Shown here piece after piece: positions 10,680 through 43,816 of a stretch of DNA of 64,000 nucleotides. The stretch comes from Ostrea edulis (taxonomy: Eukaryota). Under the pieces are notes generated by a model that was not told where the DNA came from, searched no databases, and worked only from the letters and a program-made list of their open reading frames with translations. How positions within the stretch are numbered: the first letter of the stretch is position 1; each line of letters starts with the position of its first letter. Position numbers and translations under genes: made by a program. The stretch spans positions 9,486,001 through 9,550,000 of the forward strand of contig NC_079172.1 in assembly GCF_947568905.1 (NCBI RefSeq). Direction: 5' to 3'.

Positions 10680-10829
10680 CTAAGACTCCGAGGCGATAAT
10701 TTACGGTGATCACAATGACCTTGCCGTAGCTTGCCAACACGCTACCCTCGTAGGCATTTCCGGTTCCTATGTCATACGACTCTCCGTGTATGAATACCAT
10801 TACAGGGAATGGTGAAGAATCATTCTTTT
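10680..10829 (-). CDS. NLGN: Neuroligin constant exon C1 (absent from the ORF track; receives V1/V2/V3)
   Basis: Acceptor tgtcttttcag|AA, donor G|GTCAGT. Encodes (E)[50 protein letters not shown]; phase 1 at both ends. Confidence 0.94.
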
Positions 10830-12529
10830 CTGAAAAGACAAAAAGATATGACGTTAGGTGGATTCAAAGGTAACTGTAATAAATCTTTCTTTCAGGCTTC
10901 TCATTACGGAAATCGTCAAACAAACAAAGGTAATGCAATCTGGGCAAAACAGGCAAAAGTGCCAAGAAACATTGTTAGAGTATCATCGCAATCAAGGCAG
11001 ATCCAACAAGGAACCGTATCACTTTGCTTTAAACACATTTGTTGTGAAAGATCACTTCCAGAATTTTCCATATTTTGAGACATATTAATGCATTGAATAC
11101 AGCATCTCACATAATGTAGTACTTGCATTTAAAACAGCTTTCTTTAATCATTTCATTTGCTTTTTTAGAAAATCTTGTTGAATATATGAGGATATATTGT
11201 AATAGAATTTACTTTAATTTCATAATGAAGTGAACAGTTAGACATTTCACTCGTGACACTTCGACGATTCAATCAACGCCAGCGAACTAAACTGATCCAA
11301 TTGCCTAGACTGTAGTAATTGACCCATGGGTATCAATTAATGAGGAACAAGCGTGTCATCTTCACGCGGAGTTATATCGCTCTCCGACAGTTTGACGTGA
11401 CTTTGGGTTCTGCCAATGACGGGAAAAGTCACATGACACCGATAGAAGTCAGAATTAACCGTGTAACTGCACCGAGACAATGTCATTTACTACAGTGCTT
11501 GACAAATTGATCAATTCATTTCCGCCTATACAACATCTGTGTATGAAAACAAATATAAATTTAGAGATGATTAGTTTACTTAATATAGTTTTTGAATATT
11601 GTGTTTCTTTTAATAAAAAAGAAACCACAACACCGAATCCTACATGTAGCCTACAATTGCATGTATTTACAATGTAACGTCATTATATAGACGTCGTATC
11701 AGCATCCGAATTCAGATGTTGGAATTTAGTATGCAAATAACACCCTGTGAACCCTTACCAAAGCAAAATCAAATTCCTCAACTTAATGATTGTGTATCAC
11801 AGAAAATGCACAGCTGACCTGAACACAGACTTAGGATTGATTGGAGGTGGTGTGATATCATTCTTAAAGACTATTTTCAGTGCTTGCTCATTTGTTTCTG
11901 TTTCCTTGGGTTCTAAAGCCTGAATTCAGTGTGTAAAGGTGATCATTAATTGCGAATATATTTTTCAGGTCATGGAGTACAGATTCAACGAAAGTTGATC
12001 ATTTAAGAAATGCTAATTAAATTTACATGTATTATTATTTGATATATTTATGGTAATGCGATTTTATTCAAAATTGAAAAAAAAAATGTTTTACAAATAA
12101 ACACATGGGGATATGAAATTGTTTCGGAACATCTGATTCCAAGTGTTATATCTAATTGAGGTACAGAAAGAAATCATCAGTTTTAGCTGGCCTTACGCTA
12201 TTCATAAGCTAAACGAACAGACTGGCCAATGCCCCATAGCGATTGATTCAAGCGCACAGTGGTGATATTGACTTTAAAATTACAATACAACAATACATGG
12301 TTCCATCCAATATGTTAATTCACAATGATTTACAAAAATGCAAAACTGCAGTAAAATCTAAATCGAATCTCACGATTGTTCTTTGTACATATATCTATAG
12401 GCTTCCAGCTCATTCGATTAATTCAATTTTTTACATGTATAAAGATAGTTTCATATATATGACACAATGTGTGACGTGTACATGTAGAAACTTTGTTAAC
12501 TACTTAATCAAACACTGCACCTACTTTAT

Positions 12530-12760
12530 GAAAGAAGTGAAGATAAAGAACAGTGATCAATCTCATGACTCTTATAAAGAACGCAAAATTGAGAGTAGGG
12601 CAAGCCCCTGGAAACACGAGAGGTAGGATCAGGTGCTTAGGAGGAGTAAAGCATCCCTGTTGATCGATCTCATCTGTCGTGAGCGCTATCTCTTGATTGG
12701 GTAAGTGGAGTAATCCGTAATCAGAATAAGTGTGCAAAGAACGGCCTAGCAAATGAAATA
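12530..12760 (-). mobile_element. Penelope-like element 3' end fragment
   Basis: gtgaagataaagaacagtgatcaatctcat...ggatcaggtgcttaggaggagtaa. Confidence 0.75.
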
Positions 12761-14401
12761 TCATGGTTTTCACAATTCATCAAACTGTTCATTTCTAGTT
12801 TTCTTCCTTTTCAATGGGTCATTATTCTTGCTTACAATACACAAAATCAGTAAGATCAAGAATAGCTGATTAACAACATCTTTTCCCCCTTTTTAAGACA
12901 GTTGGCAAACTTCAAATATTCCATTGTTCATTGTAAAATTACCGGTGATCGGTCTCTTTGTATTAATTACGTCAAAGACGGGTCTCCCTTTGTCTCGTGT
13001 TTCTATAAATTAGTATTATCTGCTTTCGCTAGATTATTATTGATCGAAAACAAAAAGACTTACAGCATGGCATCACGATATCTTCACTCCGTACACACGA
13101 AACGAAAGATATTCAAAAGAAAAACTGTGCTGATTTGTATAATAAGAATTGTAATCACACAACAGACGCAGCAGACAAGTAATACCGGTACGGTAACATG
13201 GCCGCCTGCGTCTATTCGTGATCTAATGTCATCTACTTGTCTAGAAGGATATTCTTCTAGCTCCATCGAATCACTATTTCGGTTCCAAGTAAGTCTGCTG
13301 GTCATCAGAACTCATTTATCTGATAAATGTTTGGTTTTCCAGTAATAAGACACTAACAACCAACGGCAAACATTGAAACTACGGCCTACTTTATCAAAGC
13401 AGAGAAACAAATGAAATACGAACTCGAAAGACCGCGCTATTGTCAATATTGTCAGTTGTCTGCCAAAGAAGTGATGTCTTTATTACATGTGCATACATTT
13501 ATATCTAAGACTCGGCGTATTAAACCAGTTTGATTATAAACCAATATGTTTAATGAGAACCCCTTTGGTATGGAAAAGGTATGATAGGTACATGTACACC
13601 ATTGAACAACTGTATATATTAATTAGGTTTAAAAGGTATTTTAAATCCAAACGTGAATGTGAAACATGATGCAGTAAAATCAAAGTGGGTAGCCACTACA
13701 CTATAGGACAGAGAACTCACGTGTAGAAAATACACCATAAAACTGCCATGGACGACAGGGTATCTGTTGGAAATACTACCGATAATTGACAAGAAACATA
13801 GCGTTAGTTATGCAGACGATTGTAGATACGTACAACAGCATTGTTGTAGAGCAAATATGCTTCAACTTTTGTAGATTTGTACATTGTGATTCATATCCAA
13901 GGACATCAGAGAGATTGAAGTTCATATTGACTACACTTCCTGTCAAATATCTGTATACGTGCATATAATTAGAAGGCATTAATGATTCAAGCGAAAATAG
14001 TCCACAACCTTCTAAATCCTTGATATACTTCATAGGTATATTAATGGAAACTGCGTCATATAAAACAAGACTAGACGGACTCGTTGTATATCACGTGATT
14101 GAGCCGTATTTAAGGAACCATTGACGATAAAAACATCATGAAAAGAAATTTTACAGCAATACTCTAATCATGTGGAATGAATCTTCAAAATTACGCAGGA
14201 ACTGTAATTTGTATAGAAAAAGAGATCGAATGAAAAAACTCTAGGATGAAATCGAATATATTTAAGGCTCTCAGAAAATCTAAACGGAATGGAAAACCAT
14301 AAATGCTGCTCTCGTCATATCATCATAATTGTTTCCTTCAACATCTGAGTCCATCAACCAGTATATACCATTTTCACTTGTCCTTGTTAGTCCCTACAAA
14401 T

Positions 14402-14720
14402 CTGCCGTGATGGCCGAGTGTGTAGGGCGCATGCGTCGTAACGGGGAGGACCCTGGTTCAACTCCCAAACCCTGCGCCGCGTCAAACTTCAGACATTTAA
14501 TATAGTTTGTGACTGCTTCGCCAAGCGTCCGGCATTTGAAAAGAAAATCACTAGCCATCATGGCGTTAAAAACGGATATTCCCGCCACATGTACGTACGG
14601 CCTTAAGCGCCATGCACGCCTTGCATGGGTCTTAATTTCTGGCACTACATATGTACATCTACAGCTGGTGACGTCTGTATATGAGTGCAAAAATTTCCAA
14701 TGGAACTTAAAACAACTTAA
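14402..14720 (+). mobile_element. tRNA-headed SINE (degenerate)
   Basis: tggccgagtg (A box), ggttcaactccc (B box), tail ctacagctggtgacgtctgtatatgagtg. Confidence 0.62.
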
Positions 14721-15956
14721 GGAACATTCTACAAAACAAGGTCATAAAGGTCGTACCTCCCCTCCAAAAAAATTACGATCGACATTTGCTTGATTAAATC
14801 GAATATTTTGGAAAATATGATATATAATTTCATGATAATATCTCGAAATATAACGTTCCCCGTAAAATAAAATCTTTGCAACATTTTTATGCCAATCAAA
14901 ACTTTCTACATGTGGAAATACAAAAGCTCTCCAACAACGTTCTATGACAATGATACGATTTCCTGCGCTTGTTTGGCAATGAACAGATGTAAAAAATTCT
15001 TTATGAAAAGTACCATACTCCACGTGCCCTACGGGGATAGTTGTTAAAGATTCCTTTTATTACAAATTGAGGAACGTAAAGTCTAATGAAGTCCGAAGTC
15101 GAAGTGGCGCAGTTGGTGGGAGTTCCGAATGACATTAACCAGCGAGAAGACGACCGTCAACGCCATATAATGAATCGCACTACATGGAGTCATCGCAAGA
15201 AAACCCGCCAAATATTTTGTGAAATGGTCAATAGTCGCATATCAGGATAACAATGGTTTCGATTTTTCGCTTATTATCACGATTTGCATTTATCTGCAAT
15301 GTAGATTACTTCTGAGGGCCTGGGTTAGATCAGAGGAGAAATGTTGTTAGCTTTCGGTATCCTAGCTAAACTTTCGAATCCAATACGGATAAAAGGATTG
15401 ATTAACACTTTGTTTAAGAACCGTGTGACATGGCAAACGATTAGACACACAGCAGTTCATCTCTCTTTGGAAGTAATCTGATCAGTCTTCCTGCTATATT
15501 GTATTGATTGGTCACCATCAATAATCTGTCGATTGACTCTCTTTTCAAGTAGCATTTTCAAATGACGTTCTAGCGAGACTTTCAAATGCACCTCTGTACT
15601 TCTCACAATGCACAGATACTCAGCTTGGTTTTGGATATCGATATTAAGATGTTAATTGTAATTTTCATTCGGTTCTAATAAACTATAACCGCTAACCAAA
15701 CACAAATACATTACGTTAATGAACCAAAATCTGGATTTCATCAATATTGAGATAGATAGCATTTTCTTGAACTCATTAACAAAGACATTCAAAGTTTCGT
15801 GGTTTAGCAATGTAATAGACCTCTCTAATTGTGTTCCATCTACTTTCTAAAATAAAGAAATGGATATTGCAATGGAGCCCTTCTAGAAATAGCAATATAT
15901 GATGAACTTCATTGCTGATAATCACACCACAAGGTACAATTTCAAGCTAGACTTAC

Positions 15957-16395
15957 CTCTCCAATAAGGCTTATAAAGGGTCAGCGTTAGACATTCCTCG
16001 GTTGTTAAAGCGGTGTACAACCCAACATTACTAATATGCTCACGCCTCCCTTGAGGATACATATAAGATACTTCATCAGCGTTTGACAAATTAAGTCGAC
16101 GTTGAGAACAAGGTGATTTCGATTCATTTAAAAATTTCGTTTCACGCCATCTCTCATGGGAATTAGCTGGTCTTTGAAATCGTAACTGGCCGGCTCGCAA
16201 AGTAGCGTATGACAGCCCGTAAAAGGCCTCTGTAGGTGTCATTTTCCTGCTCCCTGTTGCGGGGAATTCAATCAGTAATCCCCTAACTCGCCCCTGTTTC
16301 AGTGGTATTTCTGTGGTCATGTGTCTAATAATAACAGGAGCCAAAATCCCCAGTAAGTTGCTTGCTAGTACCATGACGAAAAGGGTACCTCTCAT
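15957..16395 (-). CDS. NLGN: Variable first coding exon V1 (signal peptide + N-terminal esterase segment)
   Basis: ATG at 16395, hydrophobic N-terminus, QGRVRG, EAFYGLSY, LRFQRP, PCSQ, EECLTLTLYKP. Donor AGAG|GTAAGT, 439 nt, phase 1. Confidence 0.9.
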
Positions 16396-19175
16396 ATTCC
16401 GAAGCGGCCAGTTTCCGAAGAATCCTGACGAGTGCCGTTTCTCATACAGTAGGTATACTCATGACATTTATAAGATCACAAAACTCACAATGCGAAATCT
16501 TGGCGTGAAATTTAATCAATACCAGATCTTCACGAATCAAGGATGTATACTTCTCTTTCTCTTCAACACGTATCTCGGGCACGCGCAATGCTTATCCACA
16601 CCTAGCAGATGCTTGACAATGACCGTAAAATGTCTCATGGTACAGCGTTAGCCATTGGACTGAAAAGCCAATTGATCATTCCATCTTGCCTAACTTTGTG
16701 CCAAACTATGAAAATTGATTGCAAGGATTTCCAGTTTATTGAAAACAAAAATAAATGATCTAGCCTGAAAGTCTATGAATCGTTTGAATAACACTGGGGA
16801 ATATATGAGTAGGGGCTCTTCTGTATTACTGTCCATTTTCACCCCGCAGTAAAAGGAGATATTTATCTTAATTCGAAAGACGATAGACAGGGAAAATATT
16901 CCAAAGAGTCACGTGACCAAAGCATCCTAAGGCCAATTTGAATACATAATAGAACAAGTTACAGGAAGACAACCATAATGATAATATATTTTATTTTCGT
17001 ATTCAGATAGCTCACACATATTGGTACAGCGCTCAGTTTGGAGAAATTACCGTATGCATGAGATATCACAGCCGAGTGTTGTTGAAATCGCCTCCTTCAG
17101 GGTTTTACGTAAACGCATACAAATGAACATCCCACCATTCTTTGTTATGACAAATACACGAATAATCGATGAGATGGAATTAACAGATAAATGAATTCTC
17201 TATCGTTTATCACACCAGATAGACACCGTAACATAGAGAAGGAAAATAATGTAACATTTAATGTTTTAGTTGGATCATATCTGACACAATGTTGAGGGCT
17301 TTCCATTATACGGTTTTCGAAGTGCCGTCATTTTTCAGACTACATGTAATGGCAAAATAAATGTATGAAAACAGTTAAATGACTTCACTGTCTGTATAAC
17401 TATCTTGTTTTAATTTATCAACCTGTATAGCAACAACCTTTCAAAGTTATATAATACAGAATATATTTGTTAAGAGTTTGAAAGAGCTAGTAGGACATAT
17501 TCATGTAACGGAACATCCTTTAATAAATTTATATTTTTATATTTTCTAATGTCTTTCCTGTTTGCAACTGAGAAAATCGGACCAAAATTCCACACATCAC
17601 CGGTCACACGAACGTGATCAAGACACTTGATATCTATCCACATGAACATACTTTTGAAGGTAAATTTAATGCCTATTTTTTTTTTGTATAACTAAATGCT
17701 CAACAACGACATGTATATTGTTCTCAGATAAGATGGAACTATATTTCAGATGGTTTTCGTTCACAAAGCCTAGAAGTTGCATGCCAATTAAGCTATTCCT
17801 TAAGTGATTCCAAAAATTTGACTACTGAAGCTTTTGATTGGCTGATACATTTTCGACGTCCTCACAACGTACAAATGTACACGTACAGACCAAGTCACTA
17901 CTTTTATGTTCATTCTTATTAGTATACCTTTGATGATTAATGCGAATAAGCAAAGTGCAGTAATTGGAGTTGGATTAGAATTGTCGCCAGTGACATGCAC
18001 CTTAATTTTCCACTGCGATATGTTGATTTACTAATATCCGGAAGGAAAGTCTCGGAGATATTTTTCATCACAATCGGGAAATCTGTTTTATTATGGGAAT
18101 TCGTATAAGCAAAGGCTACTTATTCCATTACTGCTCACTTCTGCTCGTTATGCAGAATCTAACAATAGTACACACCGCACCAATTCGCGCAACCCGTCTG
18201 ACTTGATCATTTTCATCTATTATTCGGAACAAAATTGATCTATCTGCTGCATTAATCGAAAATAATGAAATAATCACGACAATAATATGATCGTGAGTCC
18301 GAATTCGTAATCTACGGCTGTTTACGCGGTGATGAATCGGTATTTTGCCGAGATGCAAACATTATTACGAAGGATGCAAAGTAATTGGACTTCGATCGCC
18401 GCGGTGGGATCATCGGTCAGCGACGGAAATAAGTCCGCGTGGTCAAGCAAGAAAAAGTAGTTCCAATGAAGTTTGGGTTTGTTTTCCGCATGAACGTATA
18501 TAGTGTCTTTACGGAAGTTATCCCGGGATAAACTTCTCTCAAGAATGTATTTTTCTATCCATGTCTAATGGCATTACAAGCAGGTTAAATGGAACGTCTT
18601 TATATTACGTGTACAAGTATAGCTGTAATTATGATAGACTTTTACACTTGGGTAAGATTTTCGTCATCTTTATGCATAGTTTATGCGAAACACACTGGCC
18701 AGATTGTTACGAAGAAACTGTACATAATAATGTAAATATAGTTTGAAAGCAGCTAGATTCTATCTCTCAAAGATTTTTTAATATCTTGAAGCAAGTGCTA
18801 TTGTTTATTTAATTTATATATATATATAATAAATGCATTATAATGTACACATCATTTTCAAAACCTTACTCTTTTGTAGTACAACAATCATCGTGCAAAC
18901 AAAATGGAAATTGGATTCTTGACTTCTGCATGCGAGTGGTTCCACAAGGCATGAAAGATATCGTTTATAAAACTTCCCAGTCCAATCTAACTGTTAAGAT
19001 ACCGACCTGCAGGACAATACATCCCACTGACATGTACAAGTTTACCTAAGGTGGCCACATATACCCCCGGAGTATCAAAAGCGAATGAATAACATACAGT
19101 AGATTTTAATTATTGGAAATATTATCAAGAACATATTTGATGTAATACAGATGATAATCACCCATATGTTCTATA

Positions 19176-19176
<1 letters not shown>

Positions 19177-19227
<51 letters not shown>
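19177..19227. repeat. (C)n(CT)n microsatellite
   Basis: Read directly. Confidence 0.95.
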
Positions 19228-20781: not shown

Positions 20782-23700
20782 TCTTAACGAGAGCCCTAGG
20801 GAGGAAGCCCAAACAGACAATGCCTGTTTCCAAAATATTTTCATAAATTCTATAAACTTCGTATTGCTTAACTGAGTATTTCAATTAAATAGATACATGA
20901 ACCGATATGTTCAAATATACATATGCACTTATGGTATTTCATGAAAACAAAACGAACAGTACTGCTGAAACTGTCTAAATACAGTCAAGGAAAATGCACA
21001 ACGATATACGATTACATTCATATCACTCAAATGCTCTTGTCATTTTGTGTCGCATATATATATTGGCATGTACTTTCGTCGCAAAAAAATAATTCTTTTT
21101 AAAAAAAAAAAAAACTTGTCGTTTTGACAAATGTCTTCTACTTACAGTAATAAAAATCAGCATTACTTTTGAGGAACATGAAAATGTTTCATTAAATGGT
21201 TTTCTTTTTAAAAGTCGCATCGTTTTCTGAACAAAACTCCCAAATGAATCGAGACGAGTTCTAAAACGCTTACTTAATTGTAAAATCGATACATCTTGTA
21301 GAGGAATTAAGGAAAAACCCGTGATCACCGTGGAAACACAATCTTAGTAAATTGTTCGTATTTTATTTTGAAAGCGCAACAGGAAAGCTAAAAAGTCGTT
21401 CTAAAGCATTGCAGACGCAAGAACAAATTGCACGTAAATGTTTAATTGCCGGAGATTTCCACGCATTGGTTTTTAATGTCATACAAGTCAATAACGGAAT
21501 TCCATGATACAAAATGTACATTATGTCCAATTATTAAGTTCTCTCCACCTAACATTTATAGAATCTACAATTTCGCGCGTCATGATGCATCTAGGTTGAA
21601 ATTTTGTGTAATTTTCTGATGGTTTCCTCACACGCAACTTTCCAGTGTTCAGGAATTTCATGGAAAAAAAAATTGACAAGGCAGATTAAAATCAAGAATA
21701 AAAGCGTTCAGTCGTGACGGAGCATTGTTTTAATGAAATTAATTCCAGACCTTATGGGTTCAAATTGCTGATAAAATAGACATAAATCAGAATAGTGTTT
21801 CTAACCGAATTTCCCTGCACATGCAATACAATAATATTTCTTTCTTAAATGTAATTTTGCAGTGCATTTCTTTTCCTGAAAATATTCTTCTTTTGTAAAT
21901 TATAACTCATGAATTTGTTCACAAATTGAAGTGTAGCTGTAACTGAAAGATGGATTCTGTCAGCCTTTCACTACAAAGGAGCAAACTTCAATTTATTCAA
22001 AATACTGTCAAAAGTCAGATTAATTTGACTTTTAACATACAATTTTCGGAATTCCTTAACTAAAAGCTACCTTTAAACACTTCAGAACATCTATTTACGC
22101 CTTGCTAATATAATATTTTGTCCAAATCATAATCTACATTAATTCGCACACTTTGAATTGAATTATAGTGGCATGTTTCACCAAAAATATATTAATGGGT
22201 TTTTGTTGTTTAACGTCCCAGAGGGAGTATTTCACTCAGCTGTGCCACATTTAGCTGTGCTTTTGACAAAATCTCTTGGAGATAGGCATTCACACGCATG
22301 TAACCAGGAACAGGTTACTCGGCAGAATTGTTATTTAAGATCCCAATTACACAGAGTCCCATTATAAAGAATTCCATTCCATATAACCAACTTTAAGTAC
22401 CGCGGGTTTAAGTGTACATGTATGATTTGGGCTCTGGACAGTGAATGCTCATTATGTCATTCGATCCCTGACAAAATCCTCACAAAGGGTGCGAATCTAC
22501 TATTTTTTGCAGCTATAGAAAAGGTGATTTGCACATGTGAGTGTACGAATCTTTTAAGTCTCCGATGCTAAATCCTCTTTCTGAAAATGATTACCGGTAC
22601 TTAAATTATCCCCCAACGAGCAAATCGTGAATGAATGCTCATAGTAGAATGAAAAGGCATATTTTTGTAACCCCCTCAACACAACGAGTAATAGTGAGAG
22701 GTAATTCGGAAGCTCTATTCTAATTACCGTTCTGGATTGAAGGTATCAAACCCCCATATGCGTAAGCCGGACGCAGTTTACCCAAGATGAAGCAGAGGTA
22801 TAAATGGTTAGGTGTTTGGCTAAAATCAGGAATGAAATTATTTGGAATTGAAAGAAATATTATAGAAGTTGTAATCAATTGTCGGGATGTGATATATTAT
22901 CGCAAAAAATCAAGAAATACTTGAGGGTATTGCCACGGTAGGGGTGTGTGTTGAAATAAAGGGTGTAATTGATTGCAGATCGTTATGTGTTGTTAAAAAG
23001 TAGAAATAGTACCTATAAAAGCAACGAGACCTTACATGTATATAATTGTTGTGGGTTATTTTTATTTGCGTTCAAATGTTGACGGCCATTTCATTTGTCT
23101 AAAATTATTATAGCTAATTAGTGAAAGAGCGAACATTTAATATCAGGATCTATGGGAAATGAATTGGTACCCTTTCCCTTTATTGTGCTTTCAGCACATT
23201 TCGTCGTTACCAATGGGCACAGGGTGATAATCTTGATAGAACATCATTTCGTGTCGTCTGTGAGTATGGCGGTCGGTAATCTACAGGAATCGTTTCGTCC
23301 AGAGTTCACCGTCTGACAACAACGTATCTTCAGTTGACATATGTATTCCTTGGAACATCTTGATAAATTAACGACAGATAATCTATACTTAAAGGTTTCA
23401 AATATATCTCCCATTGGAACACCGTCAGAGATGTCATAGACAGAGTTCGTAGCAACAGGGGTTCTGAAATCGAAGTCCGATAAAAATACGAACTAATTTT
23501 TACCATTAAGAGGTGTCTAGCGATTTCTATGTATACTCTGTTATGTGAGAGGTTTTATAGCTTTGACGACACCTCTACAAGGCAAGGGATGCAACTCAAT
23601 GTGTCATCTACAATTTGCTTTTTTAAAGTAGAGAATGCATTGATACGAGAGACAGATCAAACGTTGTTACACAATAAAACACAATCTCTTATCATGAAAT

Positions 23701-25513: not shown

Positions 25514-25937
25514 CTTTTGTATGCGGTCTGTACAACGTTAGACTGAGGCAGTCTTCAGTTATATTAAAAACTGAATGGCTAATTCTCTCCAACCTTTTTC
25601 TGAACCCCTTTGGGTCTCGTTTCTTTAAATCCTGACCCCAGAACATCCTCTGGGGACATGGTGCACGTGGATATTGGAATAGGCGTATGTCGTGCCATAT
25701 TTCGGATACAACAGTGCCAGGCATGAACCGGAAAGTTGATCCGTAGATGGTTGAATACTGTAATCCTCTGTATGTTTCCGCTGACTTTAAAACATAGTCA
25801 TGAAATCCGACAATTTTCCCTTGAATTTGACCGTAATGGGTGTTCACTATTGGGCCCATTTCCTGGATGAAGACTTCACATGAGGTATGGAGAACACACT
25901 CGTTAAAAACTAATAATAAAACCCAGTATAATTTCAT
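25514..25937 (-). CDS. NLGN: Variable first coding exon V2 (signal peptide + N-terminal esterase segment)
   Basis: ATG at 25937, signal-like N-terminus, IVNTHYGQIQG, ETYRGLQY, FRFMP, PCPQ, EDCLSLTLYRP. Donor AAAG|GTGAGT, 424 nt, phase 1. Confidence 0.88.
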
Positions 25938-28414
25938 GTTATGTTCAAAGTCGAAACAATACCCATCAATTTGAGATCATAGAGAGAACATTTCGGTGTA
26001 CAGACGGTTTTCTCATTTTCCCACAAACCTATCCAGCACTGTACCATTGAGCTCTTTTTCCTGACTCCTTGTGCCGCCTCATTAGAAAACGACCTTGTTT
26101 TGGTGGCTGTAGAATGTGTTTCCTATAACATCATCACAAAGCAAACCAATAACCTAAAAGTATCCACATCCAAAAGAAACAAATTCTCTTTTATTCTAAT
26201 ATGTCAAAATGTTAGTTCCTGTGTCTAATTACATTAACCATTTCCAAGTATTAAACTCCTACAATTTTATTAACACGGTCTGGAATTAGCAGATTCGATT
26301 TCTTTTGATTGCCTCACAAAAATCAAGTACCGACAGAGCGGTAGAGCTGGAGTATGGAGAGAAGGCCTCAACAAATCATTGTTTATCTTCGATCACTCAC
26401 AAATCATTGTCTGGCCTGCTGAGATATTTCAGGAAATGTCCACCACACGTTAGGACTGTTCTCATGGATTGGGAATGGTGAAGTGTATGTCAGATTCATT
26501 CCGTCATACTCTACCACGTCAATGGGATTTTTTTTCCCCCAATATAAGAAATAAACATTTCTCTCTCTGAAGTAGAAGTAAATGCTTTCATTGCATGTAC
26601 GATCACTTTAAGAAGATCAGAATGGATGAAAGTGAACTCCATTGAAATATAAACGAGATCGATAACAATTAACAAGCAGCATGCAATCACAATTGCATTT
26701 TTTTTCTTTTGGGGAACATCAAGATTAATCTCATTGATATTTGTATTTTTTGATAACAAAAAGAACATGCTCATAGATTAAGGTCAGTTATACCTTTCTA
26801 AAGAAAAACCAATGGCAGAATATTTTTATATCTTAAGGATTTAAGTGGTCGGTGGAAGAAGCGGTAGAAAGTCTATTAATATCACTCTCAGAAAGATTTA
26901 CAGCAATGGTGGCAGACATTGGCGAACTAGGGTTGGCAATATTTCCCTATTCGAAATCATTATAATATTTGACCATCACAATAAACCGGTCCAAACTTGG
27001 CGTCAATGTGGTTCAAAAGCCATTACGATGTCTTTATGTCCCGAAGTCCGCATAATTTCACGCCTGGACGTTTTCCCAATATCTTGAGATGGCAGAAAAG
27101 TCTACTCCCAGTTCTTCTAAAATCTGTCACCGACAATCAGGGGCTGTATTGAACAGAATTACAGGGGAGTTTATATTCATCATGCGGAAGATTCCAACAG
27201 AGTCTACATGGAAGAAAAGAGTGACTCAATAGACAATCAGTATAGTCAATGCTATCGTTACAACTGGAATTTCTTTTTCCCGATGTGGTACTCCTTACAA
27301 TACCTTTCTCTAATCTACAACTATAGAATATGCAACTTATCGAGATAGGTTCTATTGTCTAGAACAGAGATCGTCATTAACAAATTGATTCTTACACAGA
27401 AAACCTGCGTGATACCAGCGAATTTATCAAAGAACTGAGTTCAAGTTAAGAAATTTAAAAGAATATTTTCAAGAACACGGAAGAACATATCATCTACACT
27501 GTCTTATCATGTTGATACAATAAAACACTGCATTGATACGTGTCCATACGTGCATGGCAAAATCAAACTTCAATGCATTCCGAATCATGTTTTCATTTTC
27601 TATGTAAAACCAACCAGTGAATTTAAGAAGTAAAAAAACTGCATTAGTAAGCAACTGCACATTATCTTTGATTTCTTTACAGTATTTTGCAAGATCTCTT
27701 TTGTATTTTGATATTTCAATCAAACATGAAAGATTCAAATATGAAGTAATCTCTCTGATATATTTTACAAACGTTCTCCGTAAATCAAATTATCTCCAAA
27801 ATACTCATTACTTATGAAAAATTAGTTACATAATATTGTTCTTTACAAAAGAAGTAATTATTAAAGAATCTAAGAGCCGTGTTTCTTATCCCTTCTTTTA
27901 AGCTAATTGCATTAGGTTGAGTGAGGAGATGTGTTGTTCCCTGTACAATAGGAACGGTGATGGGAGATGTAATTGTAGAAACGATAGCTCCCTCTGTCAG
28001 ATATTGCATATTGTTGAACATATTTCTTCATTACACAGTGAAAGTGATATTTTCATAGAAGAAAAAGGCTAAAACTATTTGATCGAACCCTCGATAGGGA
28101 TTTGTTTCAACACAACAACAAACAACACTTAATTAATGCGCTGTCCTGATAGAGAGGGTTTTTGTTATTGACGAGTTGTTCTCTACTTGAGGAAAGCTCG
28201 ATTTACTCTTATAAATGTGTAGTCGTGAAGAAACAGCACTTTATTTCTTCATAAAAAGAATTAAGAGCTTCATTCACAAACCCAAACATTATGTTGATAT
28301 ATGTCAATATCAAACTGACGTACGGACTGGTGAACATCAGTTAAAAAGTACTATATAAGTTTACAATCCAAAAACTTTACCAAAAATTAAATCTTATTTC
28401 AATTCATCAAAAGG

Positions 28415-33971: not shown

Positions 33972-35232
33972 AGACGCGCTGTTAGTTAATGGAAAATGAG
34001 ATACAAAAAATATAATTTCCAAAACAAAAAAACTAATCGCATGTAAATATATTAGCGTTAACGTTTTAAAGATCCATTTTGTTGTATAAAATATTCAAAC
34101 CTTCGTGATGTAAGATCTTCAAATGTACGTATGAAAAAAAGTCATCCTAATGTAATTGTTTTGCAACCTGTATACAGAAGAAGTTAAAGAAGTTCACACC
34201 TGAGTTGTGTAACATTGTCATTTTTCTGGGGAAGTATATTAAATTATTGAATTTCTATATTAATTGAAGGGAATTGTGAAATTGAAAAGCAAAACGGGGG
34301 TCATAGTTCTTGTTATTGATCTAGAGTGCGTTAAGGTTGGTTGAGACGCACGGTTAGTTCTAAGAAAATGAGATATAAGAATTATAATTTCCAAAAGAAA
34401 AATCATATGTAAACAAGAAATGTTTGTAAAACAAAATTAATAGGGGTCATATACTCCTTATGATGTACCAGTCTACCAAGTTTGATGTCTGTCAAGCAAA
34501 GGGTTCTCAAGATATTGAGCGGACAGTGTCTTCCTATATCCAGAGTGGACTGACCTTTGACCTTTTGACCTGATTATCGATAGGGTCCCTCTTCTACTCA
34601 TAACCAACCCACATATGAAAGGTGAATATAACGAACAGTGATCAATCTCATAACTCCTATAAGCAATACAAAATAATAGTTGGGCAAACACGGGCCCCTG
34701 GGCACACCAGAGGTGGGATCAGGTGCCTAGGAGGAGTAAGCATCCCCTGTCGATTGGTCACACCCGCCTATATCTTGATCAGGTAAATGGAGTTATCCGT
34801 AGTCAAAATCAGTGTGAAATTTCATTACGATCAAATGATTGGTTCTCAAGATATTGAGCGGACAACATGAGGTCTACCGACCGACCGACAGGTGCAAAGC
34901 ATATGCCCCTCTTCTTTAAAGGGGGACATAAATATATTAGCGTTAACGTTTTAAAGATCCATTGTGTTGTATAAAATATTCAAACCTTCGTGATGTAAGA
35001 TCTTCAAATGTACGTATGAAAAAAAAAGTCATCCTAATGTAATTGCTTTGCAATCTGTATTCAAATTCTCTAAAGTACCGATATTTGTATTGAAGTAGTT
35101 ATAGAAGTTTGCACCTGAGTTTTGTAGCATTGTCACATTTGGAGGGTATATCAAATTTTTGAATTTCTACATTGAAAGGGAATTGTGAAATTGAAAAGCA
35201 AAACTGGGGTCATAGTGCTTGTTATTGATCTA
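33972..35232. repeat. Local tandem duplication (~350-bp unit); the second copy carries nested insertions
   Basis: gcgttaacgttttaaagatcc...gtcatcctaatgtaattg and gggaattgtgaaattgaaaagcaaa...gttattgatcta each occur twice. Confidence 0.85.
34411..34931 (+). mobile_element. Helentron/pearl-type non-autonomous element with a nested Penelope-like 3' fragment (34617-34816, minus)
   Basis: Same family as 59470-60505: aacaag start, ccgaccgac microsatellite, terminal palindrome atgcccc...gggggacat. The empty site is seen at about 34040. Confidence 0.8.
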
Positions 35233-35782
35233 CACTGTATTAAACGTGACATTGTTTGCACCTAAACTTGCGATTGATTCACATAAACTAGTTTTGTCTG
35301 TTGGTGTCAACAAAACATAATCGTTACATCAAATTAATGCATATTCACATCTTCGTACCATATATATAGATACGAAAGTGTGATGTATAGTAGAACAGAA
35401 ATACCACAGAGCACAAGATTTTGCACTTAAAATGCGGGACAATTCATCATTTAGAATCTGATACTTTATTAGAACATACTAGGAGTGTTATCAGTTTTTA
35501 ATTTTGAATCGACGAAAAAATCAACCGGATGGGTTTAGATAATGAATGTATAAAGGGCAAATGATATATGATTATTGACCAAGTACAGTCATAGCGTCCT
35601 GCGCGATTATGGCTAAAATTATGGTTAAAACTGAGGAGCCAACTTTTTAAAGCAAGCTTTAACAAGGTCTATTGGAGATTGTATAGCCTGGTGTCTAATG
35701 CAAGGGACGTACACATACACTTGTTAATTTTAAAGAACTGTAATCTTTTGTTGTTGGATATACAAACTATTTCATTCATTTC

Positions 35783-36928
35783 ATGTGGATTCTAAAAAAA
35801 AAATTAAAGAACTTTCAGTAAATTTGAAATCGCAAACCTTTCCCCAAATCAATAACATCAAAACCTATGACTTTTCAACAGTTTACACGACCATTCCTCA
35901 CGATAAATTAAAGACTAGACTTTTTGACATCATAGACAGTTGCTTCTTCAACAAAAATGGAGAGAGAAAAATATTCATATCTAGTGATCAGTCATTCAAA
36001 AAATTACTTTGTTAAACACCACTCTGATTCCACGCACAAGTATTCTGAAGTTGGAATAAAAAATATGCTAGAGTTCCTCATTGACAATATCTTCATGGAT
36101 TTTGGTGATCAGGTCTTCCAACAGTCTGTTGGAATTCCCATGGGCACGAATTGTGCTCCTTTGTTAGCTAACTTTTTTCTATATTCATATGAAGCATAAT
36201 TTATTCAAACACTTCTACGTGAGAAGAAAAAGTCTCTTGCGGTGGCCTCCAATTCCACATTTAGATAAAACAATAATAACTTTCATTCATATGTCGATTC
36301 CATATCATGTGAGCTCGAAATAAAAGACACCACAGAGTCGTCCACTTCTGCTTCATACTTAGATATTATATGGAAAGTAGACATTAATGACACACCGACA
36401 ACTCAACTGTATGACAAACAGGATGATTTCAGCTTCTCCATCGTCAATTTCCCATATCTATGTAGCAATATTCCATTATCACATGCATATGGTGTTTATA
36501 TCTCTCAACTGATTCGATACGCAAGAGCTTGTTCTGCGTATGGTGAATTTTTAAATCGAGGTAGGCTACTGACAAACAAGTTGATGGTACAGGGGTTTCA
36601 ACAGTCTCGATTAAAGTAAGCATTTCGCAAATTCTATGGTCGTTATAACGATCTAGTTCGTCAATACAACCTATCAGTGGGTCAACTGCTGTCTGACGTG
36701 TTTCATACCGTTCTTGGCACACTGATTTTGACTACGAATAACTCCGTATACCTGATCAGGATATGGGGCTTACGGCGGGTGTGACCGGTCAACAGGGGAT
36801 GCTTACTCCTCTTAGGCACCTGATCCCACCTCTGGTGTGTCCAGGGGTTCGTGTTTGCCCAACTATCTATTTTGTATTGCTTATACGAGTTATGAGATTG
36901 ATCCCTATTCGTTATCTTCACCTTTCAT
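35783..36928 (+). mobile_element. Penelope-like retroelement, 5'-truncated and disabled RT + 3' end (longest copy)
   Basis: WILK, KTYDFSTVYTTIPH, QQSVGIPMGTNCAPLLANFFLYSYE, LEIKDTTES, YDKQDDFSFSIVNFPYLCSNIP. Contains stops and frameshifts; the YIDD segment is deleted. Confidence 0.88.
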
Positions 36929-37602
36929 AAGTGAAACGAAACACAATTTTTGTTTTACATGTTCAAAATTATCTCAATAACAAAACATCGAATTTTTTGT
37001 TTATTTTAAATTTTTAGTTGTCCTTTTACCTCTTTTAGCTGTCTTGTCTTTGACGTTCACAACAATGTTGCAAAAATATCAAAATCAATACATTTGAAAA
37101 TAAGACAACTTCAATTTAATCATGAAACATGACATTTTCTAAAATTATGAATATGAATGCGATCATATACATCTATATTGCAAATATTTTGGCCATCAAC
37201 TATTTCCGTTCGCGATTTCACACTGTGAAAATATCACAGTGTGAAAATAGTGATTGTGAAAATATCATTATTCAATGAATAAATTACAGTATATCACTGT
37301 TGTAACTGTAATAACACAAATGTATATCTCGCTGTCTTAATTGTTAAAGGGTAATCCCCTCGGTCTCAAGTTATAGTTTGGAAATGAAATATTGCATTTC
37401 AGGGTCGTTTTTTTTTTAAAAATAATTTTCTTTACATTTTTTAATTCTTAAATCAACAAAATAAGAGGTAAATATCTAACAGAATTCTACTAAAATACCA
37501 AACGTTTAGATAAAATGAGAATTTATCTAGCTGTCTTTAAATGCGAAAACATTAAAAACCCGTTCCAACGGCTCCATTTACGCGTTGCCGATAAAACGTA
37601 TC

Positions 37603-38170
37603 CCCTGTTCACACGAAGAATTTGATTCACATTAAACGTACATTTGTGCGCATTAAATCTGAACCACGTTCACACGGAAATTTTAATGTGAATTAGTTTA
37701 CTACGGATTTTTTAAATTTTACTTGTAACATTCCATTTGATTGGTTCATTTGACTTTATCAACATTCTTGATATCTTAGATATTGATAAAGTTGCCGTTT
37801 AGTCCTGCTATATGACGTCCCAGGTATGACGTTACAATAGGTTGGACTCTTCTATTTCCATTTTGTTGCTAATATATATATATATGTGTTCATAAATCGC
37901 TTCGCTTTAGAAATGCATACATGAATTTAAGGTGCATTATAGTTTATTGCACATTACTGTCGAATGAACGCACTTTAATTCGAATTGATTCAATGCGCAT
38001 TATTTTACTTCGCATTAGATTTAATTCGAAGTATATTTTTTTAACGCAGCTCAGTTAAGGCTATCCTAATGATACCTGTGAATATGAGGTGCAATTTCAC
38101 ACCATGATTAATGTGCATTTTACTATGGAAGCCCTTAACCTAGCTGCGAAGCGCATCCGTGTTAACAGGG
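37603..38170. mobile_element. MITE-like element with short TIRs
   Basis: ccctgttcacacg at the left, cgtgttaacaggg at the right; superfamily not assigned. Confidence 0.5.
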
Positions 38171-38834
38171 CGTCACACCGGGGTTGTGGTTATTATGGGT
38201 AACACCCATACTGCTAGCCAATCAGAATACGTCGAATTTTAGATCAAGCTATGGTGAAAAATGAGATCGAGTTGTCCGTTAACCTACCAGTGGACGCATC
38301 CATTTGGTTTCCAGTATTTACGTAATTTTCTTTTTCATCTGATTCACTAGATTTCACTTCACGGACAAAGATGATCTCTATTGATTTAAGGGGTCAAACA
38401 TCCATTGTTATAGGAAAACAGTCCCCAGGCCTTAAATGATTCAATGGAGTCACCAAACTTTAAAAATTAACCAACCATGAAATGAAGACGTTAAATGTCG
38501 GGTTCAAAAGGTCAGGGGAACTGGATCGGTTACAGGGTCTTACTTGATTTTCTATCAACCCAAGGTCACCTTCATATAGAGACTTGTCATGGAATAAGGA
38601 TGAACCTCTCGATTTTGGGGTACGGCGCCTTGGTCAAGCAATCTGGACAGTGGTATATAGAAAAAAGGATCTATGGGAAACTTTTATTGACTTTTAGGTC
38701 TATAGGATAACCAAATTGAAAAATAATGTCTGGGTCGCAAATGGTTTTCCCTCTCACAATACATATTTATCAAAGAAGCGTAACACAATTTTCTATCACC
38801 TTGGTATCTCTGTCTCATTTCAATTGTGCAGAGT

Positions 38835-39092
38835 CCCTTGGGGATCCAGATTAGAATAGGTCCTCAATACCCTTGCTTGTCGTAAGAGGCAACTAAATGG
38901 GGCGATCCTTCGGATGAGACCGCAAAAACCGAGGCTCCATGTCACAACAGGTGTGGTACGATAAAGATCCCTTCCTGTTCAAAGGTCGTAAGTGCCGAAC
39001 ATAGGCCTAAATTTTGCAACCCTTTAACGCAATGGTGACGTCTCCATGTGAGCAAAAGATTCTCGAGTGGGCAACAATATACAACCAACCAA
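38835..39092 (+). mobile_element. SINE with non-tRNA head and Deu/Nin-like core (copy 2)
   Basis: 14-bp TSD caattgtgcagagt / caattgagcacagt. Core cttcggatgagaccgcaaaaaccgagg...gataaagatccc; (aacc)n tail. Confidence 0.8.
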
Positions 39093-42000
39093 CAATTGAG
39101 CACAGTAGGAATGTAACACTCTAACTATAGTACAAGTCATCATAGACACCACCCTCACTGTGAAGTGCAGAAAGAATTCCTTGTGGTCTGTTGCACTGAA
39201 AGATTCGATAAAACATCTAAATATCACCAGTATATTATCATACTAGGCACCGGGTTATCTCAATGATTGATTAACGATATGATATTGATCTCAAAATATA
39301 TTTGTTCAAGTAATTGTCGGGTATTATTAACCGTCGTTTTGGGAATCCTGACATTCAAATCACGAACTATCAACATGATATCACACTTCTTTTGTTTGCC
39401 GCAAGTGTATTTAAAATGTCAAAGCTCTAAAATTTCTAGATTTGGAAATATCACCAATATTCAGGCAACACATGCTATTAGACTCAGTTTGATATTTTAG
39501 ATTGGGAAAATGTGCAACAGATATTCTAACTGATGTAAATGATAAATATTATTTTAGCAATTTATAACTCAGAAGAATATGCATGGAGTGTTCACTTCAT
39601 AGAAATTGTCATTTGAAACTTTACGGATTGTCCGTAATGTGACGAGTTTTTGAATGATTTAGTTTCAAAATAGCAACATAAGTTTTCTGTCCTATTCAGG
39701 AATTGCGTAAATAGACTTCTTTTCATGACGTCAGATTTTTGTGGTTTGATAAAAATGAAATGTTTGTGGATTTCATGTCGTTTTGAATTGTTGCCAATGT
39801 GTACGATCAATCGTGGAAAATTTAAATTCATGGTCATGTTTTTAAAATGAAATTTAGATCCCCACGAAAATAAGTAAAACTTGTACTTAAGGAAATCTAA
39901 AATACGTGTAGAAATTTTAGTTCCATAATCTTTTCCAGCACTATAAACCATATTAATTTTTACGGAAGGAAACTTTTCGTTGGGGTTTGGTATAATTATA
40001 TCAGACAGATTTTTATGTTAGCATTTGCAGAATGTTGTAGGGTTTTGCGTATTTACACTCCCCGTCCTGCAGGGTAAATGTCTTTATCAGATCTTCAAAT
40101 GACACATTTGCATGTTTACAAGACATCCCTTGTATTTGCACTCTATACGTCTTGAATAAGCGTTTTACAGAACCAGAAACACATCGCATGCTTTGGACGA
40201 TTACAATAAACTCTTGCAAATTTGTCCATTGATTTCTTTTCCTTCTCTCAAATCTATTTATTTTTTTTCCCTTCAAATTATGGTAGTTCAAACAGGTCGT
40301 GCTCGTGTTTAAAACTTCGTTGAACTTCGTGATTTTTTTTATATTTTGGAATGTTTTTTATGTGGCATACTCCATAAACGAACATTATTAAAGTTCAGTT
40401 TAAAGGGAAGCCGAATGGAGTTTCGTGCTTACGCAAGAATCCCACTAGTGAGAGAGAAAAATGTGTGGGATCAATGTCAATTCCCGAAAAGATACAACAA
40501 AGTCTTACCATCCACAAGTAATTTCACCAATTTTGTTGTAGTTCATCAAAACTAATATTTCAGTATTTAGGACATCCGAGCTTATCCAAACAATTTAGCT
40601 GTCCGAACACATCACTATTACAGGGAACCAATCAAGCGGTTAGACTGTCGGACCATCTCTTCCTGTCTTTATTCAGCAGTTTGAAAGCTTTATGTTCCTC
40701 TACAGGGCTGTTTTATTCGTGTTTTCTGGTAATTGTCCTCATGATTTTTCAATAAAAGCTGATTTTCCTTTACATTGCTTGATGTAATATAAAAGAGGTC
40801 TTTCTTGGATAATTTTTATTCCTGAAAAACTAGCTACATTATCTGAAGTCTAAATGCAAGTCAATGATTTTTTTTCCATTATTATTCCAACTCTCTCACA
40901 ACACAAAATTTTCTCTTCCACACAATACAGTATTTGTAAGGTTCGACCTTCGACTGCGATCGATATCAATTATTGTTTTAAAAAGTGATGATTTTAGGAT
41001 GGCGATGAATGCTTTGTAAGTTTTAACCTGGTTTAGTTCAAAGATCTTTTTGAACTTTAGGCATTGCAATATTAACGTTATGAATTCACTACAATGTTAG
41101 AACTAGATACGCTTGCTGAATGCCACCATTGTTCTTTGAACAGGAGGATTGAAATTGTACCAATTATACTGCTTCCAAACACATCTTTTGATGAAACTGA
41201 CAAGAGATCAAATCTAAGCGGCACATTTGATCTCAATAAGTAAACACTAGGACGGTGACATGGGAATACCCTTTTGAATTTTTGATCTGTAACTCCCGTG
41301 ACTATCATTCCTTATATAAATAGCTTAAAACGTGTGTCTTTTGAATGAAATGTGATATTACAAGTGCACATGCATCAATGTGCTCAAGTTGTATAAGGCA
41401 AAATGTACATACACGTATACATGTTTAAATGGCCGCTGGTGATAGGGTTTTGAAGTCAAGTATGGAAACAGAGTTTCGTTGGTTAAGACATATTGCAAAT
41501 CCGTACGATTTCCCAGGACACCTACCTATAACACATGCAAATTAATCGACATGTAAATTTTGCTTGAAAATAAGACACAAACTTGGTTGCCAAACTGCAA
41601 AGCGCAGAGATCGACCGACAGCACATTTCCTCTTTTAGCACAAAAGCCGATTTTTCGTTTGAATTACCTTTCTCCCGTTTTCGCATTGTCCATTCTTTTA
41701 AAACCTAGCCTATGTGCACCCGTCTATGAATCTAAACCTATAACGGCCAGATATTGGAAGGGGATTGCAATATCAACTTAAAGTTCCGTAAAGATTTACT
41801 GAAAAGTTATGTTGATTTCTTTGACGTTTTAACCTTCCGCGAAAACGGTAGCGAAAATAAAGCATCGCGCAGTATTGGGGGAAAATCACTCTCACATGTT
41901 CTTTATAGACACAAGCACGGGCCACACAGAAAAGAAAATGACATAAAATGAATATTCTGTGACTAATGATAATAGTAAAGTAGCAAAAGAAGTTCAATTA

Positions 42001-43383
42001 TCGTTGTCCTACGTACTTTACAAAGAAAATAGATTTCTAAACGTTTCATATATGAAGCACTGTGAACCTTTTCCATCCAATCCCACGCTTCATTTCGGTT
42101 GTCAATGACTTCATCTAAACTTTTTGGCGCACTACTCGGTAATTCAAGTTCAATGAAACGACTGCATTTTCGTTAAATTCAATTGGCATTATTTATTTCT
42201 GGGAATATCAAAGACTGTCGATCTCAGACAAAAGAACTTTTTTTGTATTTCCTCGAACGTTTCTTTTGCATCAACTATGGTTTATGTTAAAGTAGACGAT
42301 TATATTTTGACACAAAGTATTCCACACAAAAAAAGTCAGATGTTAGAACTATTTGAAATAAAATGTTTCATGTATCAAATAAATCCACGCTCCAACGACT
42401 ATAAACCAAAACCACAAGCATTATAAAACCCAAGAAAACAATACTGGGCAATTTTGTTTAATGGAATTTTGATATTCATATCTGTATTCAATTTGTATTC
42501 ATGCAAAAAAAAAGTTAGATAAATCAAATATGTGTCAATGTATGAATTCTAGAGCTGGATGATCACATGAAAACAAAATATCAAAGTCCCATTTGTAAAA
42601 TTGATCAGTTATTGTGCGTTTTAGTAAGACGGCTTTAACTATGTGCATTTTACGAAACTTTCGCATTCTTCTATATGCTCAATCGATAAGTTAGTGGGTT
42701 AACTACTATCGTAAACAGATTTATTTATTCAAATTATCATATAGTATATTAAGAAAAAATACCAGCAGATGAGATTAAAGGTATTTCTGCGTAGAAGGAA
42801 AACAAAGCTAATCTTTTGAGATGGGATGAGAAATTGAAGTGTAATCTTATAGCTATCTTAAGGGTCCCAAGAGGTGAAAATACTTGACACTTAACACTTA
42901 CTCGTTTTTAGTATTTACGACAAAAATTTCGATTGTAACCGAGTTTGATAATTGAAATCTGCAGAAAGGCATATATGTAGTTAACTTTGATTTTAAAAAT
43001 GATGACCTGTTAGCAGAATTTCTTTTTTAATACATTGTATTATCTGGTAGCAGAATTTCAAATTAAGGCGCGTAGAATTCCTGTATACATGCATTTGATC
43101 AGGTTTATCAAAAGATAAGATCTGAAAATTCATTATCGAATTAGGATACTTGGAATGGATGGTAAAGGAGCAGATAGTTGAATATATTGATTTGTAATTC
43201 GCTATTGTAAATTCTGAAGCACAATTCTGTTTTTGTAATCTCCATACGAGAATTTAAACATGTATTTTATGGGAAGCAATGAATTCATAAACACAGTTCC
43301 TTGAGCATCATGTCTTATAAATGAAACAAAAACGACTTAAAACGATATCAATCTATCAATTCAGCTAGTTGTAGAATACTTAC

Positions 43384-43816
43384 CTTCCACGGGAATATAG
43401 ACATTTAGGGATAGACAATCCTCTCTCATTTTATTCAGAAAATGATCTTTTACGTGTTTTGAACGTTCTCTTAAGAAGTCGGGTATGAAACTCGTTTCTA
43501 GAGGCTGCGAATGCCGTTGAGCACAAGGCCCCCAGTACTCCACACGATTGTCTATACGATCCCATATCTTGTACGAGCCTATGGGTGGCATGAACCGAAG
43601 ACTTGCAGAGGTAACATGGTATTCGATTCCTCGGAAGACTTCAACTTTTCCAAGTCCAGTGGAGGCAGAAAATTCTACCTCCAATCCTCGTATATCCCCT
43701 TGAGGTGTATTCACAATGGTCTGTCCTAGCTTGTTACTGACAAAATTCCCATAACGTAACGTGTCCACTACAATAACCCACGAGAAACAAATCAGCACAT
43801 TCCATGTTGCCATCAT
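43384..43816 (-). CDS. NLGN: Variable first coding exon V3 (signal peptide + N-terminal esterase segment)
   Basis: First in-frame ATG at 43816 (the track start at 43828 is TTG). IVNTPQGDIRG, EVFRGIEY, LRFMPP, PCAQ, EDCLSLNVYIP. Donor GAAG|GTAAGT, 433 nt, phase 1. Confidence 0.88.

Follow-up and report, generated by a model that had tools for sequence, protein, structure and literature searches.

Neuroligin diversity is usually described in terms of gene paralogues and short inserts at the splice sites A and B. The locus analysed here raises the question whether one neuroligin gene can provide several different neuroligins through the choice of its first coding exon. It is located in a stretch of 64,000 nucleotides from Ostrea edulis (assembly GCF_947568905.1, contig NC_079172.1, positions 9,486,001 to 9,550,000), hereafter called the window; coordinates are window positions unless another locus is named. 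We consider it highly probable that the window holds a single neuroligin gene whose body of five constant exons (C1–C5) is encoded once, and that one member of a tandem array of paralogous first coding exons (V exons), most likely each with a promoter of its own, is spliced to the first of these.

Exon organization of the locus

Three alternative first coding exons are found on the minus strand: the proximal V1 (16395..15957, 439 nt), V2 (25937..25514, 424 nt) and V3 (43816..43384, 433 nt). All three open with an ATG, followed by a hydrophobic leader, and close at a phase-1 G|GT donor, namely TGG AGA G|GTAAGT in V1, ACA AAA G|GTGAGT in V2 and GTG GAA G|GTAAGT in V3. An in-frame TGA at 16461-16459 shuts the frame upstream of V1, hence position 16395 is the V1 start. 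The constant exons, likewise on the minus strand, were rebuilt from their splice sites: C1 (10829-10680, 150 nt), C2 (10120-9932, 189 nt), C3 (8337-7530, 808 nt), C4 (7362-7259, 104 nt) and C5 (6815-5857, 959 nt including the stop). C1 starts at 10829 behind TTTTGTCTTTTCAG, the one acceptor seen that would serve every V exon. Since it begins with AA directly after this acceptor (TTTTGTCTTTTCAG|AA), the junction codon is G|AA (Glu) for V1, V2 and V3 alike. The spliced open reading frames (ORFs) with V1, V2 and V3 comprise 882, 877 and 880 amino acids, respectively. A first-pass annotation of this DNA had proposed the coordinates, start codons, leaders and phase-1 donors of the three V exons as well as their in-frame joining to C1 through a common codon. 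The former are now confirmed to the base from the DNA, and the latter by the three open frames. The carboxylesterase anchor motifs that it had listed proved to be invariant columns of the V exon alignment.

Each V exon matches positions 2/3-94/95 of the Pfam COesterase profile (PF00135) with E values of 3e-8 to 6e-12. C1 follows at profile positions 98-145, C3 covers 208-471, and the V exons together with C1–C3 match consecutive segments of PF00135. Because the V exons share one profile segment and C1 comes directly after it, they are exact alternatives for that segment of the fold. By tblastn they match one another at E 1e-10 to 5e-12 with 24-35% identity, which is far above chance.

The window contains no N and is thus free of gaps. 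A tblastn search of every constant exon against its full 64 kb did not find a second copy, in agreement with the earlier statement that V2 and V3 have no constant region of their own in the window. A C1-like match on the plus strand (23171-23224, 18 amino acids, E 0.006) was taken as chance, being isolated, on the opposite strand and not recovered with the constant region of Crassostrea virginica.

The encoded protein

By every sequence-level criterion the predicted gene product is a neuroligin. The constant exons encode the greater part of its cholinesterase-like ectodomain. C2 carries GHGHGAA at the position of the esterase nucleophile elbow (GESAG), so that the catalytic Ser is replaced by Gly, and this motif aligns with GSGAGAS of NLGN2. 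C3 holds segments that align with the neurexin-binding face and the dimer helices of the vertebrate proteins. C5 encodes the stalk, a transmembrane helix and the cytoplasmic tail; its transmembrane segment and the juxtamembrane YY(K/Q)RDR align with NLGN2, and the C-terminus ...AITVV ends in TVV, which resembles a PDZ ligand. In a phmmer comparison of an orthologous isoform with solved structures, NLGN2, 1, 4 and 3 were found at E 1e-119 to 1e-99, CES1 and cholinesterases (AChE) at 1e-64. An AlphaFold (AF2) model of a V2-type orthologue, with a predicted local distance difference test (pLDDT) score of 85-96 in the core, was used for structural comparison. Foldseek returned neuroligins at all ranks from 1 to 33, and a helix at residues 690-731 of the model fits the transmembrane region.

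The V exon covers only COesterase positions 2-95 of 515 and therefore encodes part of one fold, not a complete domain. This module of about 145 N-terminal residues comprises the signal peptide, three long N-terminal strands, the complete Cys-loop and the EDCL strand. Both cysteines of the Cys-loop are encoded within the V exon, V3 likewise having a Cys-loop of its own. In the AF2 model the V|C1 junction is located in a low-confidence loop (residues 140-145) between two strands, just before the PVMVFIHG strand. Comparison of NLGN2 chains with and without the insert showed that the junction aligns with the insertion point of vertebrate splice site A.

Orthologous genes in other oysters

The V2 exon was searched against 1.8 billion sequence representatives. 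Hundreds of genomic ORFs of about 150-250 amino acids matched query residues 1-138 and ended there; they are the first exons of neuroligins of this kind from other genomes. One protein of 879 amino acids (P0068) was also among the matches, the RefSeq entry 'neuroligin-2-like isoform X2' of Saccostrea echinata. Past its first ~143 residues it is close to the constant region of the window, and its N-terminus is none of V1–V3. Clusters at 90% list the isoforms of the orthologues, X1-X4 in S. echinata, X1-X5 in S. cucullata and X1-X5 in C. virginica. In these three oysters the RefSeq isoforms differ only N-terminal to a shared EK(D/N)(N/D) start, and five V types can be distinguished. The V1-type N-terminus is found in S. 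echinata X4, S. cucullata X1 and C. virginica X1/X2, the V2 type in S. cucullata X4, and the V3 type in S. echinata X1, S. cucullata X3 and C. virginica X3; V4 and V5 are two further types among the oyster isoforms. The gene range of the S. echinata orthologue amounts to 138 kb.

In the RefSeq gene models of the three oysters, and of many other bivalves, the V segment is joined directly to the first constant exon. The NCBI pipeline has thus independently modelled, in three other oysters, the V-to-C1 splicing proposed here. The earlier suggestion that one locus makes at least three neuroligins on an identical core gains from the V1-, V2- and V3-type N-termini among the orthologous isoforms, but its view of the array was too small, since there are at least five V types.

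The only relative's locus read as DNA is that of C. virginica (L002), in which the gene spans 87 kb. Here tblastn placed V5 at 10001-10420, V4 at 47156-47584, V3 at 67727-68164, V2 at 77396-77818, V1 at 87490-88008 and C1–C5 at 92172-97170. Between V5 and V4 a V6-like exon was found on the plus strand (34223-34666) with an ATG, a leader and a phase-1 G|GTAAG donor. The order is consequently V5-V6-V4-V3-V2-V1-C1..C5, with the constant exons present once only. All six V exons are intact, i.e. open, with ATG and leader at the start and a phase-1 G|GT donor at the end. The V6-like exon fits none of the listed RefSeq isoforms and may represent an unannotated one.

A blastn comparison of the whole window with L002 gave about 30 colinear blocks in the same order from one end of the window to the other. 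An assembly artefact that joins the first exons of different neuroligin loci to one body would account for V exons that are only 24-35% identical, like separate paralogues. However, the independent chromosome-level assembly of C. virginica has the same V3-V2-V1-C order with similar spacing, the colinear blocks exclude a misassembly, and the window is free of gaps. This explanation, which the first-pass annotation had named as a possible refutation, is effectively refuted and would be the least credible of those considered here; the conservation of exon order in another genome, a check proposed at the same time, was borne out.

The comparison also indicates the position of the remaining V exons. 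A tblastn search of the window with V4- and V5-type N-termini gave only weak cross-matches to V1–V3, so that V4 and V5 are absent from it. The farthest colinear block (61397-61270) matches a point 10 kb downstream of V4 in C. virginica. Given the colinearity with a locus of six V exons, V4–V6 must lie beyond coordinate 64000, upstream of the window. The window thus covers the 3' two-thirds of a single ostreid neuroligin gene.

Evolution of the variable exons

Substitution rates between the window and C. virginica were calculated according to Nei and Gojobori. Synonymous sites are saturated, so the ratios of nonsynonymous (dN) to synonymous (dS) rates are meaningful as upper bounds only. V1 has a dN of 0.16 and a dS of 1.05 (dN/dS about 0.15), V2 a dN of 0.15 and a dS of 1.6 (about 0.10), and V3 a dN of 0.26 with a saturated proportion of synonymous differences (pS) of 0.75; over V1–V3, pS ranges from 0.57 to 0.75. 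The dN values of C3 and C5 are 0.065 and 0.083, and C1 is identical at 49/49 amino acids. The V exons thus evolve 2-4 times faster than the core, yet clearly under purifying selection. Genomic ORF orthologues in several oyster datasets show 71-98% identity for V2 and 57-64% for V3, and all of them keep the frame and the ...G|GTAAG ending. The conservation of ORF and donor, together with dN/dS well below 1, rules out that V2 and V3 are decayed relics.

A maximum-likelihood tree was built from 50 V modules. Every V type of the oysters came out as a clade of its own, which united the species possessing that type with bootstrap values of 99-100%, and V1 was the sister of V2 (97/91). The V array is therefore older than the divergence of the oyster genera sampled. 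The bivalve V modules together constitute a single clade (96/87), separate from the gastropod modules (99/95). Orthology of V types across bivalve orders was not recovered, the tree being a polytomy at that level.

Upstream regions and candidate promoters

Identity upstream of the V exons was determined in 100-bp bins between the window and C. virginica. From -500 to -1 it amounts to 61-93% (mostly 73-93%), equal to or above that of the exons themselves (51-82%, full bins), and it drops to 26-49% just past the V donors. The block upstream of V1 (16396..17356, minus strand) is 90% identical over 371 bp, with 79-93% in the bins from -500 to -1 and 36-42% after the donor. For V2 (25938..26524, minus strand) the identity is 82% over 499 bp, with 76-85% in the same bins and 35-49% after the donor. 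Upstream of V3 (43817..44877, minus strand) the bins from -600 to -1 reach 61-84%, compared with 26-43% after the donor; identity is 87-88% in blocks, and the blastn block 44877-43558 matches L002 66648-67985. The conserved blocks continue for 500-1000 bp up to the V ATGs. This conservation, seen although synonymous sites are saturated between the two oysters, and its sharp drop past the donors point indirectly to one promoter and 5' untranslated region (5'UTR) per V exon, and we regard the three blocks as candidates for these.

A single-copy conserved non-coding element is located between V2 and V1 (18055..18471, minus strand; 82-89% identity to L002 83582-84001, 82% over 421 bp). Its conservation falls at a donor-like GT(G/A)AG common to both oysters, and neither a Pfam nor an Rfam match was found for it. 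It may be a non-coding leader exon of V1 or an enhancer.

Two further candidates in the upstream regions were rejected. GATTGATTAAA was considered as a common promoter element, as it is found near V1 and V3 in both oysters, but it occurs 6 times in the window versus 5.4 expected by chance. The models of the C. virginica isoforms X1/X2 begin 24 codons ahead of the MRG methionine of V1. In the window the frame of this N-terminal extension (16396-16470) is closed by the TGA at 16461-16459 and reads ATG TCA TGA, i.e. an upstream ORF of two codons, and the extension is non-coding.

Several points weigh against the proposed use of alternative first exons with separate promoters. Every protein that Logan/ENA yielded for V2, V3 or the constant region is a single-exon ORF of genomic origin that runs into the intron. 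The V-to-C1 splicing is derived from NCBI Gnomon models of orthologues in other species and not from RNA of Ostrea edulis, and some of these models could have been propagated between species by protein homology. The argument for separate promoters is one of conservation alone, and a shared promoter motif was found neither by all-against-all blastn of nine upstream regions nor by k-mer enrichment, which did not exceed shuffled controls. Finally, an acceptor-like CAG precedes the ATG of V1 by 29 nt (CTCGTCAG|), and the conserved element 2 kb upstream of V1 ends in the donor-like site described above. Thus V1 might also be used as a second exon behind a non-coding leader.

The first of these points bears on an explanation in which V1 would be the sole exon in use, V2 and V3 the remnants of incomplete duplications, and the models of isoforms in other oysters annotation artefacts carried over by protein homology. 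No spliced V-C transcript is among the retrieved Logan/ENA pieces, and a stand-alone model of the V3 exon with 117 amino acids in M. gigas (K1PQG4) illustrates that annotators can mishandle V exons. However, in every genome sampled V2 and V3 retain an open frame with its ATG and leader, the two cysteines of the Cys-loop and a consensus donor in phase 1. With synonymous sites saturated, their dN is only 0.15-0.26, whereas relics of that age would be unrecognisable, and their upstream DNA is conserved above the level of the exons. It is therefore very unlikely that V1 alone is functional.

The last of these points would fit one distal promoter with a shared non-coding leader exon, in which case the V exons would be internal, mutually exclusive cassettes as in Dscam. 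Besides the acceptor-like site ahead of V1 and the donor-like end of 18055-18471, a weak AAG acceptor-like site common to both oysters is present about 280 nt upstream of V3. In V2, by contrast, the 63 nt read ahead of the ATG contain no AG, and the C. virginica V2 is without a candidate acceptor within 600 bp. A strong, positionally conserved acceptor close to a V start was found for none of the V exons in the comparison of both oysters, V2 and V3 included. Furthermore, the C. virginica X1/X2 models run through the acceptor-like site of V1, and the upstream blocks continue without a gap over 500-1000 bp as far as the ATG, which would fit promoters followed by 5'UTRs. A distal promoter is hence unlikely, though less so than the exclusive use of V1, and we prefer alternative first exons with separate promoters. 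A hypothetical splice from V2 to V1 at the acceptor-like CAG would be in frame.

Proposed mechanism and comparison with known systems

By analogy with clustered protocadherins (Pcdh) and UGT1A, we propose that each V exon most likely has its own promoter and that the choice of the promoter selects the V exon. The cap-proximal phase-1 donor of the chosen V exon would then be joined to the C1 acceptor, the sole one available, and V exons located downstream, which have no evident acceptor, would be removed as intron. The resulting neuroligins would have the neurexin-LNS6 face in common, as well as the dimer helices, membrane anchor and tail, and the face formed by the N-terminus and the Cys-loop would distinguish them. 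While the exon anatomy, the isoform models of the orthologues, the synteny, the purifying selection and the conserved upstream blocks were observed, the selection of promoters, the mutual exclusion of V exons in Ostrea edulis and any effect on function are inferred.

The locus resembles the vertebrate Pcdh alpha and gamma clusters in its tandem paralogous V exons, which are arranged in one orientation upstream of a single constant set. As in Pcdh, each V exon has a start codon, a signal peptide, a 5' splice site and no evident 3' splice site (apart from the acceptor-like CAG at V1), a conserved block lies upstream of each V exon, and the predicted product is an adhesion molecule of neurons whose cytoplasmic tail is common to all variants. 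In contrast, the complete ectodomain, the transmembrane segment and part of the tail come from the V exon in Pcdh, whereas the oyster V exon accounts only for the initial ~20% of one alpha/beta-hydrolase domain. The oyster neuroligin has 5-6 V exons compared to 14-22 in Pcdh, a shared promoter motif like the conserved sequence element (CSE) of Pcdh was not found among the oyster V upstream regions, and neuroligins bind heterophilically while Pcdh recognition is homophilic and combined with a stochastic choice in single neurons. UGT1A is similar in that variable first exons with their own promoters are joined to shared downstream exons (both predicted in the oyster) and in that the variation lies in the N-terminal, ligand-facing region of a single protein with a catalytic fold. 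There, however, the V exon encodes the complete N-terminal enzyme domain and not a sub-domain of a non-catalytic adhesion fold.

Among invertebrate neuronal receptors, chelicerate sDscam (PMC4835542) also combines tandem 5' variable cassettes with alternative promoters (again predicted in the oyster), as an independent reinvention of the Pcdh logic. It differs in belonging to the Ig superfamily, in having whole-Ig-domain cassettes and in its number of about 50-100 isoforms. Honeybee neuroligin-3 (PMC2570956) is spliced inside the cholinesterase-like domain and conserves the site-A intron, but the bee variants skip internal exons and share one first exon, so that no array of paralogous first exons exists. 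With vertebrate neuroligins the oyster gene shares the V|C1 junction, which corresponds to the position of the splice-site-A intron. Vertebrates, however, vary this region by separate genes (NLGN1-4) and short cassette inserts and do not swap a whole module within one gene.

For the function of the exchanged segment, data from mammals are relevant. Residues 52-180 of NLGN2 suffice to give NLGN3 the inhibitory-synapse function of NLGN2 in rat neurons (Nguyen et al., PMC5098909), and this is the segment equivalent to the oyster V module plus site A. The Cys-loop is located on the 'PAS side', opposite the neurexin-beta face, and is part of site II for MDGA (Ig2); the N-terminal face may touch LNS4 of neurexin-alpha (Bourne and Marchot, PMC5943944). 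On the strength of these parallels, neurexin-LNS6 binding, dimerisation and intracellular signalling are probably the same for all variants of the oyster locus, which would differ in the surface that in mammals distinguishes the paralogues and binds secondary partners.

A more far-reaching idea is that bivalve neuroligin loci form a Pcdh-like recognition system. Individual neurons or classes of synapses would make a selection from the 5-6 V promoters of each gene, with two adjacent genes in oysters, and the swapped face would dictate the secondary partner (MDGA-like, alpha-neurexin LNS4 or others), resulting in a cell-specific code for synapses on an invariant core that binds neurexin. Such an identity code is speculation, and we rate it as rather improbable.

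A full-text literature search gave no account of a neuroligin with variable first exons. The closest published cases are the exon skipping of bee NLG3 (PMC2570956) and the 5' cassettes of chelicerate sDscam (PMC4835542). The first-pass annotation, which knew of no description of the layout for neuroligins, was correct as far as papers are concerned, but RefSeq already models this layout in many bivalves. The layout is thus undescribed rather than undiscovered and is present in public gene models. What is new here is an architecture of the Pcdh/UGT1A type in the neuroligin family, with a variable exon that encodes a sub-domain of one fold. A whole structural module up to splice site A, including the Cys-loop, would be swapped within one gene by the choice of the first exon, and it is the module that sets inhibitory versus excitatory competence in mammals. 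The arrangement was already in place before the oyster genera split and has been kept since then, and it recurs in mussels, scallops and clams. It offers a natural experiment on the role of the non-neurexin face of neuroligins and adds another independent invertebrate case of Pcdh/UGT1A-type gene architecture. Its value is tempered by the presence of the isoforms in automatic annotation and by the small number of 5-6 variants per gene.

Distribution across molluscs

Oysters have a second neuroligin gene. In C. virginica it is located at L002 103833-107173 on the minus strand, tail-to-tail and ~6.7 kb downstream, with alternative first exons and one constant region. RefSeq lists four V types of this second gene in S. 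echinata and five isoform models each in O. edulis and C. virginica, the N-termini of which were mostly not compared. According to RefSeq models, Mytilus has at least four V types (with up to 15 isoforms in M. edulis), scallops three, Mercenaria four, Ruditapes at least five and Mya at least three. Two V types each are present in Haliotis and Patella, and a single N-terminus in Octopus and in the nemertean Lineus.

Some of these models contain short additional variants. Isoforms of Mizuhopecten (P0168, P0167) and Ruditapes (P0327 vs P0332) carry short extra peptides exactly at V|C1, e.g. an insert of 18 amino acids; these inserts of scallops and clams are site-A-like cassettes on top of the V exon choice. 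At the C4/C5 junction, C. virginica X1 and X2 differ by five amino acids (GNYDF; P0288 vs P0285), and Mytilus (P0164) has a cassette of 18 amino acids at the same position. In the window, plain read-through of the C4 donor into the C4-C5 intron (7259-6815) runs into a stop, therefore a GNYDF-like micro-variant may not exist in this gene.

Additional features of the window

Two distal conserved non-coding elements lie upstream of V3 on the minus strand. The first (51742..52164) is 74% identical over 426 bp to L002 62793-63211, colinear and single-copy. The second (61270..61397) is 82% identical over 135 bp to L002 57480-57611 and colinear with the V4-V3 interval of C. virginica. Across the introns and the 3' flank, 22 single-copy non-coding blocks that add up to ~6.5 kb are colinear with C. 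virginica and show no mutual similarity; the conserved non-coding blocks include 5313-5431, 9156-9271, 11318-11367 and 13211-15524. An Rfam scan of the whole window gave no match.

Two segments in the introns and the flank resemble transposon relics, namely a weak reverse-transcriptase fragment on the plus strand (35957-36196; RVT_1, E 0.004) and an ORF of 168 amino acids with no Pfam match on the minus strand (2995-3498). An interspersed repeat is present in three copies in the window (1334-1572, 38840-39024 and 53466-53632) and also in C. virginica (L002 82214-82480).

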